Origin: Schizochytrium sp. TIO01
Lineage: Eukaryota > Protista > Bigyra: Labyrinthulomycetes
Direction: 5' to 3'
Assembly: GCA_004764695.1 (NCBI GenBank)
Contig: SMSO01000014.1
Location: forward strand, 1,483,648 to 1,547,647
DNA: 64,000 bases
The translations under genes were made by a program, and so were the position numbers. The notes below the pieces were generated by a model. The model worked only from the letters and a program-made list of their open reading frames with translations, had not been told where the DNA came from and made no database searches. Below are positions 173-19,116 of the stretch, in pieces. Within the stretch, counting starts at the first letter, position 1, and the number at the start of each line of letters is the position of its first letter.

Positions 173-3085
173 TTAGATGCGGTCAAGAGTGTCAAGACCA
201 AGCAAGTTCATTGCCGTGCGGAGAGACACGCGAACAGCACGGATGAGGATGAGCCAGTTAACACCATGCTCATCAGCGAGCTTCTTTTCGCTCTTAATGA
301 TAAGCTGGTGAGTGTTGTAGAACTTGCTGAAGGCACGACTGACATCGTAGACGTACTTGCAGAGGTGGTGCGGCTGAAGCTTGTTGACAGCCTCATCGAA
401 GCGGTCGCCGAAGCGAAGGATGGCAAGAGCAAGATCCCATTCCTGAGGGCGCATGCGCTCGATGTTGAGGCTACCAAGACCGCCCTGGATGATCTCCTCA
501 GCCTCAGTGCCAACAACCTCCTTCACAGCACGCTCAATGCTGCAAATACGGGCGTGCATGTACATGAGGTAGACAGCAGTGTCACCATCGCTCTGAAGCA
601 TGTGATCATAGTTGAAGACATAGTCCTTGATGCGAGCGTTCTTCAAGTCAAAGTATTTGACAGCGGAGTAACCCAACTTGGAGGATGCCTCAGGAACCTC
701 CTCAGGAGTTAGCAAGCACTTGTTCTCCTTGATACGCTCGTTCAAGTCGTTCGCCATACGGTCGCGGGCCTCGTCAAGGAGATCCACGAGACGAACGGTG
801 CCACCCTCACGAGTACGGAAGCGCTGGCGGTCAGCACCCTGCACAACACCAAAGGCGACGTGGTCAAGGCGGACACCATCAACCCAGCCAGCACGCTGAG
901 CAGCCTCAAAGCAAGCAAAGAAGTGACGCTGCTGGCCGGCATCAGTGACGTAGGCAATCCAGTCAAGGTTAAGCTCTTTGGTACGGTAGCGGATGGCAGC
1001 CATATCGGTAGTATCATAGCCGTAACCACCGTCACGCTTCACAATAAAGAGAGGCACAGAGTTGGCCTCAGTGCGAATGACCTTAGCGCCATCATCATCC
1101 TCGAGAAGCTTGCAAGCATCAAGTTCCTTGACAGTGTCAGGGATGCGGGAGTTATAAAACGACTCACCACACACACCATCAGGGAAGGAAACGTTCAAAC
1201 GATCGTAGATCTGAGAGAACATGCTCTCACTGATGTTCAAGAACAGCTTCCAGCCAGCCATAGCCTGCGGGTCGCCACTCTGGAGCTTGACGACCTCGAG
1301 ACGGGCCTCCTCCTTGAACTCCTCAGACGCATCAAAGGCCTTTTTGGCAGACTTGTAAAATGCCTGTGATATTATTATTGGTACATGGTAAACACATGAC
1401 GAAAGGTTTAAGTTAGCTTTAACTGAAATGAATCCCATATTACACATCCCCTGACTCGTCCTAGCTTTACTCTACCCCCACCTAATCTATTTATAATCTC
1501 TCCATCATCGATTTAACACCCTTCACCTTTCACTTCAGAGACTAGTTCGAATGTCCGCAACCGAAAGACCATCCCACCTACGGCTAAAAAAAGGCAGGGC
1601 GGTGAGTTATGGTGCGAACTTGCACTCTAGCACCTCTTGCGCAGCTACAGCTCATTCACCAAAGGTGTTGCTGCAGCCAACAGAACGAATTCTGCGCGCG
1701 CAAAATGCATATATGCTTTGACATTGACACCTGTCGAATTGTCAAAGAAATTTAAATACCCACCCTCTCTAAATATATACACGAGAACAAAAAGAATTGG
1801 CACTAATTCACCTCGGGTTTTTGTTGATTAAAAAACAACCAGCAAATCACCAATTCAACACTAAAGCAATAGAACTAGAAAGTCCTTTATTGCGAGCAGA
1901 TAAGAAACTTACATCAAGATCAGAAATTGTGGGAGCGCTTTCCAAGTAGTTGGGGTAGTTGTGGCGCATGTAGGTAAGGAGCATACCGAACTGGGTGCCC
2001 CAATCACCAACGTGGTTGATGCGCTTGACATCATGACCCTGGAAGGTGAGCATACGGCAAAGAACCTCACCAATGACTGTAGAGCGCAAGTGGCCAACAT
2101 GCATCTCCTTGGCAACGTTTGGTGATGAAAAGTCGACACCAACCTTCAAAGTGCGCAGAGCGCGGGGCGGGAGAAGCTTATCGTTGTCGACAATACGACG
2201 AATGCGCTCAGCAACAAGGTTCTCGTTCAAGTACAAGTTAATGAAGCCAGGTCCAGACACCTCAGCACGGCTGATGATATCAGGGTATACACGAGGCTCG
2301 TTCTGAATATGCTTCACGAGAGTTGCCGCAGCATCCGCAGGCTTCTTCCACTCCGGGCGAGGAGCACGCTTGAAGATACCCATGGCGCTGTTAAGCTGAA
2401 AGTCAGGGTACGGAGCAGCTCCGTTGCGAGATCCCTCGCCGACGCTAGACTCCATGTCTGGCACCTCCTTGCCAACAGCAAGGTCGCAGGCCTCCTTGAC
2501 AACCTTCCACAGATCACTCTGTGGGTCAGAAGCATTGTCAAGGTAAGAAAAGAGAGCCACCTGCATCTCAGCATCAGTTTTGCTGAGGCAGGACTCGAAT
2601 TCAGGGTGTTTGGCAGTGATCTTCTCGAGCCAGGCAGAGGCGTTAGGGCCAAGGGCAATGCCTTGGTCCTTGGCCAGACGCAGAGAGCATCCAAGGCAGA
2701 TGTCTGCGAAGGAGATGGTCTCAGAGGCAAGGTAGAGACCAGAAACCTTGCCGAGCTTGGCCTCGAGACTAGCATCGAGAGCCTCACCGGAGATGATGTT
2801 CTTGGTGATTACGTTCTCGTCGAATTCGGCAAGATCAGCAGCGAGAAGGCTGTCGCTGGGCTTCTTACCGGCAGCGAGAAGGTATCTGCAGATGGCATGC
2901 TCGCCGAAGAGGTTGTTGTTCTTCTCAATAGCAAGCATCGGGAGACGCTTCGGCAGAGCAACGGAGACGCGAGCAGCGTTTACAATCTCGACGGACTTGC
3001 CTGAGAGCGCAGCAGCAACCTTGCACTTGTAGACAGCAAGGCGGCTGGCCAGGCCCTGCACGGCAGCGAGTTTTAAGGCAGACAT
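173..3085 (-). CDS. RARS1: Arginyl-tRNA synthetase (cytosolic type) with N-terminal GST-like domain; 2 exons: 3085-1913 and 1363-173
   Basis: ArgRS motifs VDFSSPNVAKEMHVGHLRST (HIGH), NHVGDWGTQFG, YDTTDMAAI, RFRTREG (KMSKS equivalent), GDTAVYLMYMHARICSI. Phase-0 intron 1912-1364 (GTAAGT...GCTAAC...CAG) joins ...PTISDLD to AFYKSAKKAFD in frame. Confidence 0.96.
1364..1912 (-). other. Spliceosomal intron (549 nt) in the ArgRS gene
   Basis: On the minus strand: donor GTAAGT at 1912, branch GCTAAC near 1412-1417, acceptor CAG at 1366-1364; removal restores the reading frame. Confidence 0.9.
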
Positions 3086-4365
3086 AGTTGATGACGTTGA
3101 GTTTGATATCTTTGGGCTGATGAGATAAACCAACCGACTTGTATCAGGTCAAACCTTCAAGAGGGACCTGATGGAACGGACCGACGTATGCGAGACCTAG
3201 CTCGCTAGCTCACAGGCGCGTAGCACACAGGCGCTCGGCAGCCAGCTCACGGCCGACTCACCTTCGCGACCTCGATCGAGTTTTGATGGCAACTGAGAAC
3301 GAGTCATCTTCAATTTATCAATCTCTCCCAGCTCTACAATATGCTTAAGTAGTCCTACACAAATCCAAACTCTCAGTTTCTCTGTTTCTTTTTTCTTTTC
3401 TCCAACCAAAAGAACGCAGAGAACGCAGAGAACGCAATCTTTGGGCACCAATCATTCACTCATCCGGACGTTAGGACATCCTAACCATAGTCCAATAGTG
3501 TATTTTATTCTGCCCGTGTATTTTACTCATGAACTATGGTGGAACACTAGTATCACATTAGACAGAATTTTGGACGTAGGGTCACATATATATGTAAACT
3601 CTAGGAATGTGGAGATTGCTGATGCAGATGACTGCATACCTACCTACCTAAGAATTTAATATTGTTTGGCTGGCTGCGGGAGAAGACGTTCGTTTCCTCC
3701 ATGACTCTTATGCTCTATTGTAGATAGGCTGTAACACTTCAACTATCTTAATTTTTTTAGAGACTCCAATTAGAAATCTTGGATTTTGTTGCCAGTGACT
3801 TCGTCTTTCGCAAATTGAGATTAATTAATGGTGAGAATTCTAAACGGTCTATACGATCGGTCGTATTGCTACAATTATTTAAGTCTCTTTATGTGAAGGA
3901 TGGGAATCCCTGTCAACGGTAACATTCGAGATGGCGCTAAAACGGAGACATTGATAATGGTTTAAATGTAGGTAATTGGGCAGTCAATGAGTGCGCATGG
4001 ACGGAAATGAATATGGGGAGTGAATAGAGTTGAAGTATAAAAAGAAGAAATTCATATTTGGTCACTATATTAGTTGATGTGCTTGGTGCACGAAGGAAGG
4101 AAAAGTTGAAAAGACCTGGGAGAGGCCGCTGCGAAGGTGGAGCTGGAGTAGGCGCTTGTCAGATCTGCCCAATTCTGTCTCCTCACGGCAAGCTCATAGA
4201 CTGTCTTCGATATTTGATCTTCTATACAAACAAGAAACCACGAAGAGGACATTCCGTCCTGCAAAAACCAGGAACCGAGAGGGACTAACCAGTCCAACAA
4301 GCGAGGTTTATACCAGAAGGAGCTTCCACGGAAATAGCAAAAAGGTGATTTGATTGACTAAGGAA

Positions 4366-6387: not shown

Positions 6388-7409
6388 CTTCATCCACGAT
6401 TTGCCATCTTATCATAGATACTGTTGTTGTTTGATATTCAATCCAGCTCGCTACTCGTGCGCTGCCTTTGTACACCCTATGTTCTACATAAAATACATAA
6501 TTTTCGAATATTTCACCAATGTTAAAGACGTAGATATCTACAGCACAAGAGAAATTGATAATTGAATGGTTGGCTATTTTCTCAGTGAGATTTGTATAAA
6601 TTTAACAAAAAAAATCAGGCAGGTTGCTAATTTGAGGGTAAGATGCCTCTGGCAACCAACAAAATGCAGTTCTTCTTCAATGATATCCGTGAATACTGAT
6701 ATTCTCTCGATTACTCGAATTACTGTACAGATCTACCTGTCACTGTTGAATTTTGCTTCTGCATAGTGGAATACTATCGTGTAAACTGCATAACTACTGT
6801 ACCACCCAGCACAATTCTTCCACTACAAGTCAGCTCAAAGAACCAGCTTCCATAATTTCCAGAACCCTCCGTCTAGTTCTCATTCCCCAGCATGCCAATA
6901 TTTTCACTGCTTTCGTTCCTCAGAGTTGTCACCTCTCACTTCGCCAATCCCACTTCCCTGAGTTTTATAAATTCTAGGTAAATCTCGGTTTTGCAAGGCC
7001 CTTCGTATTCACAACCCAAAATCGCTTCAAGAGGTCAGCTTCTCTATGCATGCCAAATTTCCTTTCAGCCTTTCTTCGTTTTGTTTTCTTTAGTTTAAAA
7101 GTTCTTCCTAATTTCCCGACCCTGTATACTTCACTCTTGTCATTGTCATAATGAGTTATACTCGTCTACAAGTGAGTTATCTGCGCTATAATCTACTACT
7201 ATATGTTTTTTTCCCTCCTTCTACAAGTACCGAAGAAAATACCGTTCACTATACTATAGGCATGTTACTTTAAAATGAACTTTACGTCCAGCTACTATAG
7301 AATATAAATTTCACAAGTGGACTATTTAGAGTACAGCAGAAAGAGCGAGATTCAAAAGATTGAGGGAAAGGGAAAGAAGATAAGACATCAAGACCAAATC
7401 CGATTCACC

Positions 7410-8900
7410 ATGCCGGACGCCGCCGCCGCCGCGGCCTCTGCGGCGACATCGGATGAAGGTGAACAGGCTCCGCGGCCTCCCCCAGGCTTCGGTGGCGCCG
7501 CGGCGCCGTCTGTGGCAGGGCCAGCGTGGACTGGTGGCATCGGGGGCCTTGCCGCCGCGTCTGCCGTGGAGGCTACGCAGAGGCAGCCCAACATTCCATT
7601 AGGCGCAAGACCAGGTCCAGCTCCAGCTGGACCAAACCATGTGCAGCACTCTCAACAGCAATATATGCAACAACAGCACCAATATCAGATGCACCAACAG
7701 TTCATGCACCAGCAATTCATGCATCAACAGTTCATGCACCAGCAGCAGCAATTTCAACAGCATCAGCACTATCTCCAACAACAGCAGTTTCAACAGCAAC
7801 AACAACAGAACTTGCCCCAATATCAAAAACAAGATCAAAATCAAATTCAACAGGATGATGTGCAAAAAAACCTACAAGTCGACCAGCAAGAAGCAGACCA
7901 ACAGGGGCAAGAACAGCAGCAAGGATTTCATCAAGGTGAAAGCGTGGTGGACGATGATGGTGGAGTTCTTGTCGGAGGCCGCAGCGTATTCGACGACCCG
8001 GTTGGGGCATCTTCAGGGCCTCGTGCACCGCCAGGATTTAAGGAACGCCCACTCCTTGCTTCGGATGGAACTGCAGGCTACGGTGGCGGGGAGTTCAACA
8101 CGACGGTGCTTAATCGTCACATTGCACCCAAGCCACAGCGTCACAAGTGGAACAGGCTTTGGGGATATCTGTCACCAGATTATATGTCGGCAATACAGAT
8201 GGACGAAGTTGCCACTTTCAGTGTTACGAGTATGACGGTGGCAGAAACAATCTCACAGGCCCTTCTTTCCCTGGACGGCATCTCCCCAAACAGTGTGATC
8301 ACGGATGCAACAGCTTGCGTAGGAGGAAATGCTATTTCTTTTTTGCGCTACTTTGCCTTAGTGAATGCTGTGGAATTAGATGAGACTCGTTGCCGGATGC
8401 TAAGACACAATCTAGGACTTTGCCTCGAACACGAACGCTTGAAGCAAGAAACAAAGCATAAGTTTATCAAATTTGGGGGCGAAATCGATGAGGAAGCTGA
8501 GGAACAGGCTCAAGGCCAACCTCCGTGCGAATTGCCCTCCATCTTTGGAAATTTGCAAATTTACATGGGGGATTGTTTACAAGTTTGTCCTCAACTCCGC
8601 CAAGACATTCTTTTCTTGGACCCGCCATGGGGTGGAAAGCAATATCGCAAGCGCGATAAAGTCGTCCTTTACATTTCCAAGAAGCCCTTGTCTGAGATTT
8701 GCAAGTTCTTAGGCAAATACACACGCTACTTAGCTATCAAGGTCCCCTTTAATGCGGACCTGACTGACTTGGAGCAGGATGCATCATGTCAGTTTGTAAA
8801 GGAGGTTGAATTGGAGAGAATGAAGCTCGTTGTACTTGAATTCACTAGCACTCTCTCCTCAGACCAGCTCGACTTTTTCTTTTCGCTCAAATCTGCATAA
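7410..8900 (+). CDS. RNA cap guanine-N2 methyltransferase (TGS1-like) with Gln/His-rich low-complexity N-terminus
   Basis: SAM-binding segment 'ITDATACVGGNAISF...VNAVELD', catalytic 'FLDPPWGG', upstream 'MDEVATFSVT'; ATG at 7410 in CACCATG context. Confidence 0.82.
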   Translation: MPDAAAAAASAATSDEGEQAPRPPPGFGGAAAPSVAGPAWTGGIGGLAAASAVEATQRQPNIPLGARPGPAPAGPNHVQHSQQQYMQQQHQYQMHQQFMHQQFMHQQFMHQQQQFQQHQHYLQQQQFQQQQQQNLPQYQKQDQNQIQQDDVQKNLQVDQQEADQQGQEQQQGFHQGESVVDDDGGVLVGGRSVFDDPVGASSGPRAPPGFKERPLLASDGTAGYGGGEFNTTVLNRHIAPKPQRHKWNRLWGYLSPDYMSAIQMDEVATFSVTSMTVAETISQALLSLDGISPNSVITDATACVGGNAISFLRYFALVNAVELDETRCRMLRHNLGLCLEHERLKQETKHKFIKFGGEIDEEAEEQAQGQPPCELPSIFGNLQIYMGDCLQVCPQLRQDILFLDPPWGGKQYRKRDKVVLYISKKPLSEICKFLGKYTRYLAIKVPFNADLTDLEQDASCQFVKEVELERMKLVVLEFTSTLSSDQLDFFFSLKSA

Positions 8901-14536: not shown

Positions 14537-15321
14537 ACTTGGTATATATTGACTTGTGAATATAGAGTGACAGTAAATGAGAAGGAATAACATGTGCCAT
14601 ATGATCTTTCGAGATATATGTTTCGACTGTAGTTTTTACTGATTAGTGAGACTGCCAGATCAAATGGGATATACCATTCGTACTGTTTGATGCATTTTGA
14701 AATCGAAACAGCAACAGGTACTATATAATGATATGCTTTGACTCTGATTTTTACCTGAGTGGTGAAAGGATTAATAGGAGTGGAAGGTACCCACGTACTA
14801 CCATGATAGACATAATATAAATTGTAACTCTTCATATAACACAATGACCTCATGAACTGGCTAATAGAAACAAGTACGCTCATTTAGCCTGGTTTCGTCC
14901 TAATTGGTTGTTCGACTTGTATTCGCATATAATCTGGCGTTGCAAATAATCTGGCGTTGCAAAGAGATCATATCGCGATGACTTGTTCAAGTCTGGTTCT
15001 TTTATTGGCAATTCTCTATTTCCCAGTTTTGATGGTGTTGCCCCATCCTTCCTACTCTAAGTAGTGTTTTACTTACACTAAACTATAAGGGTTTCCCCAC
15101 AGAACTCTGTTGACTTGTGAAGCAAAACATGGAAACGTAGCGCTAGCAAGGGACAAGACAAAATGCAATAGAAGCTGGTGACGATTTAGGCTTTGTAATG
15201 CCCGAGGCTTGGTGGGAGCTATATCACGTGCAGCGCCTGTCTTTTCTGCTTGAGATTCTTCGTGCCAGGAGGCACCAAGACCTACTTGACGAGGAGAGCA
15301 CACAGTGGTGAACCAAAGCTA

Positions 15322-17097
15322 ATGTATAAAATGGCTCCAGTCCAAACTGGGTTCTTTACTTCGTGGCCTGCAGAACTTTCAAAGCTTGCACAATTACACC
15401 CGAACAAGCAAGCTTTAGGCGAGCTCACCAATGAAGGGAATAGACTCCATCGTAATCTAACATTTGCCCAACTTTGGCATGCAAGCTTAGGGGCTGGACA
15501 GTGGCTTTGCGATTATGGCCTCAAAGCTAATTCCCGCTTTGCTATTGTTGGTGATGACTCAATCGAACATGTGGTCCTCTGGACAGCAGCTTCTTTGATT
15601 GGGGCTATTGTAGTAACAACTGATACGTTGGCACCTTTAGCGTCGCTCATGGAGATAATTGAAGACTCGCAGTAAGTATATAACTAAGAGGAGGGAATTA
15701 ACATCGTGTCATTCATTATAGGGGTCTTCAATCATTCAAACACTGGCTAACATGATTTTCACCATTTCGCATGTGCATGCTTGGCCAAATGTACGCATGC
15801 GGATTCTTAAACTGACATTTATAGGCCCGACTTGGTTCTCGTCCTGGAGAGTACGCGAAGTAAAACTCATGGCCGAAATGAGTTTGAACAGCTCCGTAAT
15901 GCATGTTTGGATAAGGTTCAAATACTTCATCTTACCCCCGGGAAATTATTTGAAGAAGTCAAGTGCAGAAAATTACCAGAGGAAAAGCGTCTCGACGCTC
16001 ATGTGGAGGCCCCTTGGGCTATTCTTTACACCTCAGGTACAACAGGTGGCAAGAAAAAGGGAGTTGTGCGCAACCAAAGAGGAAGCATCCTGGGATACTT
16101 TGCTCACTTAACCCATATGCATTTTCGACCTGGAAGGGAAACATTTTTAGCCATGTATCCGCTTCACGGTATTTCAAGCTTCTTCTTTGTGACAATGATG
16201 CTATACATGGGACAGTCTGTGCTTTTGCTGTCTAGACAGTATTCATCATCTGGGCGAACTGTTTTTAATGCTCTTAATACATTTCCAATCACCTTCATTA
16301 CTGGCGGTCCTGCGCATTTGGTCTCGATAATTGACCATGCTGAAGCAAATGCTGACGGGAGAAAACTTCCCCGGTTAAAGACAATTTTAGCCAGCGGTGC
16401 GATGACCTCGTCAGCCACACAGGAGAGGATTCGGAGATTCTTTGCAAGTGCTTCATTCTTTGAGGTCTATGGATCTACAGAAGCAGGTATCATTTCTATC
16501 CTAGACCCTGAGGATTTTCAGGAAAATAGAGGCTCAGTTGGTTTTGAGCCTAGTGGGGTAAGCCAAATCATATTTGTAGATCCCAAGACTGGTGTTCCTG
16601 TTGCTGGAAAGCAATCTACCCCAGGGGAGATTGCAGTTCGTACACCAATGATGTGCCAAGGTTACTGGCGGCGCTCTCCAGAGCTTATCGATGGTTGGTT
16701 TCGTACAGGTGATATGGGCTACCGCTGCAATGATGGGTTTATATATCTATTAGGGCGTGCAGACGACCGAATCACCTTACCTACTGGAGCAAGTTTTTAT
16801 CCCTCAGAGATCGAACGAGTCTTGCTCCAGCATGAACTTGTTTCTCAGGCAGTTGTATTTTGGGACGAGGCAACACAGATGCTCGCAGGTCTATTTCTAG
16901 CTCGAGTGCGCGACATTTGCGATGAGCAAAATCAGTCTCAAGCTGAAAAAGAAATTATCAATTATTGCAAAGACTCTCTCGCGGACCACCTTGTCCCCAA
17001 CACAGTCCTTCCCATGTCTGAAGAAGCCTGGGCTGAGCTTCCCCGTACGGCTACACGTAAGGTCCTACGTTCACGACTTAATCTCCAAAGTTTATAA
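15322..17097 (+). CDS. AMP-binding (ANL family) acyl-CoA synthetase; 2 exons: 15322-15671 and 15825-17097
   Basis: 'ILYTSGTTGGKKKG', 'EVYGSTEAG', 'GWFRTGDMG', 'GRADD', 'LPRTATRKV'. Intron 15672-15824 (GTAAGT...CTGAC...TAG) restores the frame. The start could instead be the ATG at 15331. Confidence 0.9.
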
Positions 17098-17169
17098 CCA
17101 AGGTCAGCCAACCTAAGATCAGCCACATAGCAATGGTCCTCTCTCATACAGGACTAGCTCATGTAAGCA

Positions 17170-17320
17170 TCCGACTTAGTAAGTAAATTCAGTTGGAAAG
17201 ATGGTGCTCATACACCAGTCCGCTAACAATAATGACTTGATTCATTGCAACGTACAGGCTCAGTGGTAGAGCGTTTGACTTTTAATCAAATGGTCGTGAG
17301 TTCGATCCTCACAGCCGGAA
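17170..17320 (+). tRNA. tRNA-Lys(UUU), split by a 79-nt GT-AG intron; exons 17170-17178 and 17258-17320
   Basis: Joined sequence TCCGACT TA GCTC AGTGGTA GAGC G TTTGA CTTTTAA TCAAA TGGTC GTGAG TTCGATC CTCAC AGCCGGA A is a 72-nt cloverleaf: 6/7 acceptor pairs, perfect D, anticodon and T stems, anticodon TTT at 17281-17283. Confidence 0.88.
17179..17257 (+). other. Putative spliceosomal (U2-type) intron inside the tRNA-Lys gene
   Basis: GTAAGT donor at 17179, GCTAAC branch site at 17222-17227, TACAG acceptor ending 17257; the same signals as the mRNA introns in this window. Confidence 0.8.
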
Positions 17321-17322
17321 TC

Positions 17323-17359
17323 GCAGGAGTGTCCTGCTTCCTCTTTTTTCTTCTTTTTT
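17323..17359 (+). terminator. Short hairpin plus oligo-T tracts downstream of the tRNA (Pol III terminator-like)
   Basis: GCAGGA-GTG-TCCTGC stem followed by T6 runs at 17344-17349 and 17354-17359. Confidence 0.6.
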
Positions 17360-17817
17360 CACCTTTGTTCTTTTTTTTTCTTTGCATGCTACTCATAAAT
17401 GATAGTACATCTTAGTAGTAGTCGTTCAAGTAGAAAGTTAATCTTTCTTTTTTCTTTACTGTTATTATTATTTATTTGTTGCATCATTCACACTGAGAAA
17501 ATGGTTTGCCATAATGATACAAATTATTATAACTTTCGCTCAACGAAGAAGATAATCGTCTGTCATGCTGGGCAGACAGAACCTGTTCCAGCGAAGCCGC
17601 AGCTAGCATTGTCTTGCCTCTGCACCTAGACACAAGGTCCGGCGTGGGTCTCATAAAGCCACAGCGCCGCTTTACTTGCTTGTGTTTTGCGTACTCTCTA
17701 CACTCGAAGATCAGTAGTTTCGGCCAGTGCACGAAGGCTCTGCGAGGCCTCTTCTCAAGTCAACACCGCCATTTGACAAGCGTCTATCGTTGCAGATTGC
17801 CATTCCTTGTGAAGACA

Positions 17818-19116
17818 ATGTCGGGTTCTACATCAAGCGATTTTACGGATCAAGATGCTGTGAGTGCATTTCAAGATTGCAAACCTGAAGATTGGCAGTA
17901 TATTGCCGAGGGTGCCCTTAACCTTGCAAACCGATACGCTGGAAATGACGAGAGGCTCAAGGGTTATGTGCTTCGTGTGCGCAAGGATAACCCTGAGGCA
18001 AGTGGTGGAAAGACTGGTATGGAAAATCCATGGACAGAATCCTTGCAATTCGCGGACAAGGTTGTACTTCCGTTGCTTGGACGTCGCTATGTACAGCCTG
18101 CACAAGAGGTGCCCCTCAAGCCTGGGTTTATCGAGGAGCTACACAAGCACATCGAGCCTTCTCGACCTGAGAAACGGCGTGTGCATACTCTGGATATGGG
18201 TCTTAAGACAGGTCTGTTGATGTTGGATAACACCGCAATTCCCAAGGGTGAAGGCCCGTCGATTTGTTTCGAGCTAAAGGTGAAATGTGGCTTCGTTCCA
18301 GATAAGAGTCCATTTGTGACGTATGATGTGAAGAAAACCGCAGACAGATTTACGATGCACCAAGCCCTCAAGTATGCCAAGGGAAAGCTTGATACACTTA
18401 GTGCCTACAGCCCTCTCGACCTTTTCTCGTACGACGCACAACGCGTTCGAAAAGCTCTTGATGCTTTGGTAACAACCCCGCAGAACAACTTTCGGATGTT
18501 TGTTGATGGCAAGATGGTATTTCCTGATAGCAAGGGTCACGGAAGCCCAGAAGAGCTCGCTCAAATTCTTAAGGAATACCCAGCGCTAGCTGAGCAGGGC
18601 CTGGATGGTGTCCTTTCATCTCTTACGGAAATCCTTGTAAAAGAGCCTCTCTTAAAGAGGCTTCAGATAATGCAGGCTATGGACGACTGTGATATTGAAG
18701 GTGTATGGCCTGTATACCAAGAGATCGAAGCGCGTGGAGAAAGTATCGTACCACTGGCTGAGGGTGATACAATCTTGCCGCGGGAAGCACCAACGGAGCT
18801 ACCTAAAGATCAGGAGGGCCAACATGATATGGTACGTCGCTTTTTGCTCTCTTGTACAGCAAAGGACTGTTCAACGATGCTTGTTCTCAAACCTTCTGCA
18901 TCCAGTACACCCAAAGATTTGCCTTCTTCACCAGATCAACCCTGCAGCGAAGATCATGTAAATCGTACTATCGTCGATGGTGTCGGTCCATTTATGTATT
19001 CTATTGCTGTTGTGGACCTCGACCCTAAGCCTATCGAAAAAATGAAGCACTGGTTTGAGTTAGATCAGAAAATTGCTGACTTCTATACAAAATCTCAAGC
19101 TACCGCGGATAAGTAA
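17818..19116 (+). CDS. IPK1: Inositol-pentakisphosphate 2-kinase
   Basis: IPK1 motifs 'EGALN', 'FELKVKCGF', 'RFTMHQ', 'YSPLDLFS', 'PQNNFRMF', 'TAKDCS', 'VVDLDPKP'. First ATG at 17818. Confidence 0.92.
   Translation: MSGSTSSDFTDQDAVSAFQDCKPEDWQYIAEGALNLANRYAGNDERLKGYVLRVRKDNPEASGGKTGMENPWTESLQFADKVVLPLLGRRYVQPAQEVPLKPGFIEELHKHIEPSRPEKRRVHTLDMGLKTGLLMLDNTAIPKGEGPSICFELKVKCGFVPDKSPFVTYDVKKTADRFTMHQALKYAKGKLDTLSAYSPLDLFSYDAQRVRKALDALVTTPQNNFRMFVDGKMVFPDSKGHGSPEELAQILKEYPALAEQGLDGVLSSLTEILVKEPLLKRLQIMQAMDDCDIEGVWPVYQEIEARGESIVPLAEGDTILPREAPTELPKDQEGQHDMVRRFLLSCTAKDCSTMLVLKPSASSTPKDLPSSPDQPCSEDHVNRTIVDGVGPFMYSIAVVDLDPKPIEKMKHWFELDQKIADFYTKSQATADK

Follow-up and report, generated by a model that had tools for sequence, protein, structure and literature searches.

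Introns of tRNA genes and spliceosomal introns are regarded as two distinct classes that differ both in the enzymes involved and in the positions they occupy in RNA. In mammals, the MALAT1/mascRNA system releases a tRNA-like structure from a Pol II transcript. Dicistronic tRNA-mRNA transcripts are known in plants (PMC8166872), and disrupted tRNA genes of the endonuclease type have been reported (PMC3978253). Spliceosomal introns have been reported in the genes of U6 snRNA (a Pol III gene), of U1, U2 and U5 snRNAs and of rRNA, with reverse splicing as their favoured origin; they are otherwise unconserved and often species-specific (PMC5855946). A full-text literature search yielded no report of a tRNA with a spliceosomal intron, in agreement with the original prediction for the locus described here, which knew of none in any tRNA; such an absence is not proof of novelty.

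We analysed a 64-kb stretch of DNA (hereafter the window; C13:1483648-1547647) within the 64-Mb genome, consisting of 37 contigs, of Schizochytrium sp. TIO01. It contains, on the forward strand, a tRNA-Lys(UUU) gene in two pieces. Exon 1 (17170-17178, +; TCCGACTTA) comprises the acceptor 5' strand TCCGACT plus U8 and A9, and its 9-mer occurs only once over both strands of the window (128 kb). It is followed by a spliceosomal-type intron of 79 nt (17179-17257, +), which begins with GTAAGT and finishes with TACAG. Exon 2 (17258-17320, +; 63 nt), delimited by the match to the Rfam tRNA model RF00005, the ARAGORN cloverleaf and the paralogs, corresponds to tRNA positions 10-73 and contains the D arm, the anticodon arm with the anticodon TTT at 17281-17283, the T arm, the acceptor 3' strand AGCCGGA and the discriminator A. 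The insert is thus located between tRNA nucleotides 9 and 10. The coordinates and sequences of the three segments are all as originally described.

In its interrupted form the gene escapes standard software, as had been anticipated. RF00005 matched it with 49.8 bits at 17257-17312, over model positions 9-63 only, and ARAGORN called no tRNA across the whole 64-kb window, nor at the unspliced locus. When the exons were joined in silico, ARAGORN called a 72-nt tRNA-Lys(ttt) with anticodon UUU, the cloverleaf predicted to arise upon GT-AG excision, and this product is identical to an intact paralog on contig C31. The suggested comparison of spliced and unspliced scores gave the expected outcome, with a Lys(ttt) call only for the joined exons and 71.1 bits over the full-length Rfam model for the C31 equivalent, against the partial 49.8 bits. 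The cloverleaf is not flawless, as it had been called, because its acceptor stem carries an A5.C68 mismatch (17174/17317) that is common to all three tRNA-Lys(UUU) copies of the genome. Since both intronless paralogs have it too, the mismatch is normal for tRNA-Lys(UUU) of this species and, judging from the genes, is a feature of the mature tRNA.

The two paralogs were obtained by searching the genome with exon 2, and they are the kind of intronless Lys-UUU copy that the original prediction had proposed to look for. Located at C31:2261907-2261978 and approximately C34:2799145-2799216, both are uninterrupted and start with TCCGACTTA. The C31 copy equals the joined exons at 72 of 72 bases, the A5.C68 mismatch included (63/63 over exon 2), and the C34 copy is identical to exon 2 at 62 of 63 bases, with one D-loop base different. 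Because the intronless paralogs have the same 5' end, the 79 nt represent an insertion into a normal gene, and its borders are set independently of the splice signals; their register is ambiguous by 1 nt because there is a G on either side. Over 1.5 kb of flanking sequence, the three Lys-UUU loci have nothing in common besides the tRNA itself, and comparing them revealed no common upstream promoter, motif or leader. The unshared flanks indicate old, dispersed copies; both exons at the split locus have nevertheless stayed unchanged, which recent insertion or gene conversion would explain equally well.

The genome has few genes of this type: at least 27 Lys-CUU genes stand against three Lys-UUU genes, while AAA accounts for 190 of the 480 lysine codons (~40%) in 13 long ORFs of the window. 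Given this scarcity relative to AAA usage, a third copy is not trivial, which argues weakly for its retention. Other observations were made on the tRNA genes of this genome. Its tRNA families have family-specific conserved upstream sequences (e.g., C35:886110-888665); in a tandem array that repeats every ~209 nt, the Lys-CUU genes are preceded by a conserved hairpin leader (GGGAAATAGGAGCATCGAAGCTC...), and a TGTAGGA-like word is found ~38-45 nt upstream of Thr, Val, Leu and Lys-CUU tRNA genes. These conserved sequences may be promoter or leader elements. Two small contigs, C15 and C37, have the same set of organelle-type tRNAs, and those of C15 recur 41,149 nt apart; C15 has the appearance of a ~41-kb circular genome whose assembly runs through it almost two times, C37 that of a further copy, and this genome is probably mitochondrial.

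The insert has the signals of an mRNA intron. Its 5' splice site GTAAGT (17179-17184, +) is the hexamer also used by the intron of the neighbouring ligase gene, the branch-site word CTAAC (17223-17227, +) places the branch A at 17226, 31 nt before the intron end, and the 3' splice site is CAG (17255-17257, +). With a GTRAGT start, CTRAY at the usual distance and a YAG end, it is classified as a U2-type GT-AG intron. The window has 14 candidate mRNA introns, among them the ligase intron, which is confirmed by the reading frame; all start with GTRAGT, have CTRAY 11-45 nt from the 3' end and are 55-167 nt long. The insert lies within this range in length and signals, and the claim that its splice signals resemble those of mRNA introns in the window held for the ligase intron and the other candidates alike. 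Given borders fixed by the paralogs and signals of this kind, the insert is very probably an intron by origin, a judgement based on sequence comparison.

A chance insertion or an assembly artefact would have to account for the same signals. Among the 127,842 segments of this length in the window (79 nt), only two combine a GTRAGT start and a YAG end with CTRAY at 8-45 nt from the end; these are the insert and a segment that resembles a real intron. The signal combination at fixed borders thus has an empirical frequency of ~1.6e-5, which makes a chance insertion very unlikely. A Logan contig of 17,582 nt, derived from a different data set, also codes for the proteins next to the tRNA gene, which speaks against an artefact. 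Taken together, chance or artefact is the least probable of the explanations considered here.

The insert is a single-copy sequence, as a BLAST search against the whole genome (E <= 10) returned only the self-match; membership in an introner or transposon-derived intron family was thereby ruled out. Its folding energy of -14.2 kcal/mol, compared with -12.2 +/- 3.1 for shuffled sequences, indicates no significant structure. Within the intron, the word TTCAGTTGGAAAG in 17186-17218 (+) is reminiscent of the D loop or A box of a tRNA, and a hairpin TGGTG-CTCATA-CACCA is similar to an anticodon arm with CAT, except that its loop has 6 nt. An Rfam scan of 17000-17500 (E <= 10) gave just one tRNA match, with no second one within 17179-17257, and ruled out a tRNA remnant in the intron, as a tandem tRNA would have left; the word and the hairpin are probably there by chance.

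The closest counterparts of this gene are the intron-containing U6 genes of Schizosaccharomyces pombe and other fungi, together with those of U1, U2, U5 and rRNA (PMC5855946). Like them, it has a short intron with canonical signals in a small, structured ncRNA gene of Pol III type. Unlike the snRNAs, its host is a tRNA, which lies outside the spliceosome, and being close to the active site is therefore no explanation for its gain of an intron. S. pombe has a single U6 gene, which carries the intron and is shown to be spliced, whereas here two intronless copies exist and splicing is what we infer.

The site of the insert was compared with those used by the tRNA splicing endonuclease. Canonical eukaryotic tRNA introns lie at 37/38 and are removed by the TSEN endonuclease, whereas the break here is at 9/10, with other length and signals; a canonical intron was therefore excluded. 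The split gene has no intron at position 37/38, and canonical introns exist elsewhere in the genome, in tRNA-Ser(UGA) copies (39-41 nt, position 37). A second endonuclease-based possibility is a non-canonical intron cut through a bulge-helix-bulge, as in Cyanidioschyzon merolae or nucleomorphs, and non-canonical positions, the D arm included, are indeed known in some algae (PMC3978253). The split Lys gene resembles the non-canonical and permuted tRNA genes of Archaea, C. merolae and nucleomorphs in being broken outside 37/38 and missed by standard finders (PMC3978253). Those genes depend on a bulge-helix-bulge and the tRNA endonuclease, whereas the Lys gene has spliceosomal signals and no such structure: in both free and cloverleaf-constrained minimum-energy folds the two junctions were unpaired and a bulge-helix-bulge was absent, and inspection found no 4-bp central helix between the intron start and the start of exon 2. 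A 79-nt insert with GTAAGT, CTAAC and CAG suits the spliceosome instead. Endonuclease cleavage of this kind is very unlikely, and with no bulge-helix-bulge and a site at 9/10 rather than 37/38, the spliceosome is the only known machinery able to remove the insert.

Upstream of the split gene and on the same strand lies an acyl-CoA synthetase/ligase gene (15250-17097, +; homologs with PF00501) composed of ORF pieces 15250-15671 and 15825-17097, which are separated by a frame-preserving intron of 153 nt (15672-15824, +; GTAAGT..CTGAC..TATAG). The stop codon is at 17095-17097. Because the C-terminus ends level with those of the homologs, this stop is genuine and the sequence downstream is non-coding. 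Exon 1 begins 73 nt past the stop, the intron spans 82-160 nt beyond it and the tRNA ends 223 nt past it; the flank is probably the ligase 3'UTR or a read-through zone. Downstream, an inositol-pentakisphosphate 2-kinase gene occupies 17614-19116 (+; Pfam PF06090, E = 2e-84). When metagenomes were scanned with the ligase aligned to its two closest homologs, no ortholog was found, the matches reaching 29-31% identity only, and a protein search gave no transcript-derived protein of the same organism among its matches. Elsewhere in the window, a 527-aa ORF (7317-8900, +) has a TGS1-type RNA cap guanine-N2 methyltransferase domain, confined to the C-terminal part of the ORF, and the ArgRS gene (173-3133, -) consists of two long ORFs ~400 nt apart. 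The closest ArgRS relatives share 55-61% identity with it, and those from named protists no more than 48%.

The internal promoter of the tRNA gene remains largely in place. The A box consensus is TRGCNNAGTGG, and Pol III usually starts 10-20 nt upstream of this box. A nearly intact A box (AGGCTCAGTGG, 10/11 of the consensus) runs across the 3' splice site at 17256-17266 (+); the insert did not destroy it, as T8 alone was lost. The B box/T arm (GAGTTCGATCCTC, 17298-17310, +) is intact. With its core 86 nt downstream of exon 1, the A box does not place the Pol III start upstream of position 1. By the 10-20 nt rule Pol III would probably start inside the intron, at about 17236-17246, and make an RNA without exon 1, which differs from the U6 case; only transcription from further upstream could give a precursor that includes exon 1. 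No run of T4 or longer occurs from exon 1 to the anticodon loop, so that a transcript can run through. T runs like Pol III terminators (T6, T6 and T9; 17344-17379, +) follow, the first T6 (17344-17349) lying 24 nt past the tRNA, and similar runs are found 1-20 nt downstream of other nuclear tRNA genes in the genome.

Based on this arrangement, we propose that a paralogous nuclear copy of tRNA-Lys(UUU) gained one U2 GT-AG spliceosomal-type intron between nucleotides 9 and 10. Pol III starting within the intron would make a 5'-truncated, useless RNA, and a full-length precursor would come from an upstream start, most plausibly as part of the Pol II transcript of the ligase gene. The spliceosome would remove the 79 nt from this transcript, the joined exons would fold into the normal cloverleaf, and RNase P and RNase Z could then cut out a tRNA with the same 72-nt sequence as that from the C31 copy. 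A junction read with CCA could not be assigned to the split locus, since C31 yields the identical sequence. With a tRNA fold downstream of other sequence in what would be a same-strand Pol II unit, from which RNase P and RNase Z might release it, the locus would resemble MALAT1/mascRNA and the plant dicistrons (PMC8166872). Their tRNA part is contiguous, whereas here the fold would form only after intron removal and co-transcription is suggested by the 73-nt distance. That the intron is spliced from some transcript, through Pol II read-through or within a 3'UTR, appears from the sequence to have slightly better than even chances; that the locus yields some mature tRNA is possible, with the balance tilting somewhat against it.

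We tentatively prefer a one-off intron gain in a spare tRNA copy within a Pol II-transcribed flank, with a contribution to the tRNA pool that is minor at best, and put its chance just below even. It is supported by borders fixed by paralogs, mRNA-type signals, the absence of a bulge-helix-bulge and the Lys(ttt) cloverleaf obtained on joining, by the genuine ligase stop, run-through without a T4+ run and exons unchanged despite diverged flanks, and by the precedents of U6, U1, U2, U5 and rRNA introns (PMC5855946) and of plant tRNA-mRNA dicistrons (PMC8166872). Against it, two intact copies mean that nothing requires the split one. Possible cleavage and polyadenylation before or inside the tRNA count in the same direction, as do the Pol III-type T runs that are still present downstream, as for an ordinary tRNA gene. 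In many eukaryotes a 3'UTR intron more than 50 nt past the stop codon marks the mRNA for decay, which argues against a harmless UTR intron.

The number of such genes in the genome bears on this preference. Strict pattern scans of the whole genome required GTAAGT, CTRAC and a T-loop word and allowed the intron on the 5' side of the B box or immediately 3' to it; they recovered the split Lys locus and 11 other candidate places, two of which overlap. Examination of these 11 in the 10 loci covering them gave no tRNA by Rfam, and the genome search for further tRNAs split by GT..CTRAC..AG that the original prediction had suggested thus brought up none beyond the Lys locus in the strict scans. Anticodon-loop/T-loop pattern scans for a tRNA-Ile(UAU) with a GT-AG intron also gave no tRNA-like match, as judged by ARAGORN or, for one scan, by eye. 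A relaxed scan (GTRAGT, CTRAY) produced 19 matches compared with 61 in the reversed control; 13 of the 19 were new and are candidates by pattern. On present evidence, the split tRNA-Lys(UUU) gene appears to be a single event according to the strict scans.

This uniqueness weighs on the reading in which the locus is a dedicated, selected gene and a regular source of tRNA-Lys(UUU), with obligatory and possibly regulatory splicing. The same split-tRNA anatomy would serve it, and so would the low number of Lys-UUU genes compared with the use of AAA codons. A stable hairpin before exon 1 (17122-17168, +; RNAfold of 17120-17169, -13.8 kcal/mol, z = -3.2 versus 300 shuffles) could be part of a processed leader. 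Set against these points are the lack of a second case in the strict scans, the absence of any upstream motif common with the two intronless copies, the existence of those two intact copies and the single-copy status of the intron. A dedicated gene of this kind seems rather improbable from the sequence.

The hairpin stops 1 nt short of exon 1. The locus-specific leader ends in ...CATGTAAGCA at 17169, and the locus-specific trailer begins at 17321. By its predicted fold, the hairpin may act as a structured leader or belong to the 3' end of an mRNA. In a more specific form of a working, selected gene, built by analogy with MALAT1/mascRNA, the ligase mRNA and tRNA-Lys(UUU) would share one Pol II transcript. 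Splicing would come first and let the acceptor stem form, and an RNase P cut at 17169/17170 would free the tRNA and leave the mRNA with a 3' end that lacks poly(A) and is capped by the hairpin. We regard this arrangement as unlikely.

A dead copy has to be taken much more seriously. The insertion would have inactivated the tRNA gene, there would be no upstream transcript or the ligase mRNA would end before exon 1, the Pol III RNA would be truncated and degraded, and the perfect exons and splice signals would reflect a recent insertion or gene conversion. The two intact paralogs are in keeping with such a loss, as are the Pol III start expected inside the intron from the near-intact A box in exon 2, the standing of the locus as the sole case in the strict genome-wide scans and the single-copy intron; the 72 unchanged bases limit the age of the insertion weakly. 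By contrast, all three splice signals are at consensus, and both exons, even the one of 9 nt, are intact although the flanks have wholly diverged from those of the paralogs. With three Lys-UUU genes against at least 27 for Lys-CUU and AAA at ~40%, a third copy would also matter. On balance, we consider a dead copy nearly as likely as a one-off gain with splicing.

If the insert is a true mRNA-type intron, tRNA joins the short list of structured ncRNA genes that such introns have invaded (U6, U1, U2, U5 and rRNA), and the case would argue that RNA abundance, or mere location in a Pol II transcript, suffices for intron gain without proximity to the active site. Even if the copy is dead, it would still be a clean and datable intron gain outside a coding region. 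Such genes escape tRNA finders, so that published numbers of tRNA genes may be underestimates. If tRNA is produced from the locus, Pol II and the spliceosome can rescue a Pol III gene. If it is a working gene under selection, it would be the first tRNA with spliceosome-dependent maturation, and the supply of a scarce AAA-decoding tRNA would be coupled to the expression of one gene.
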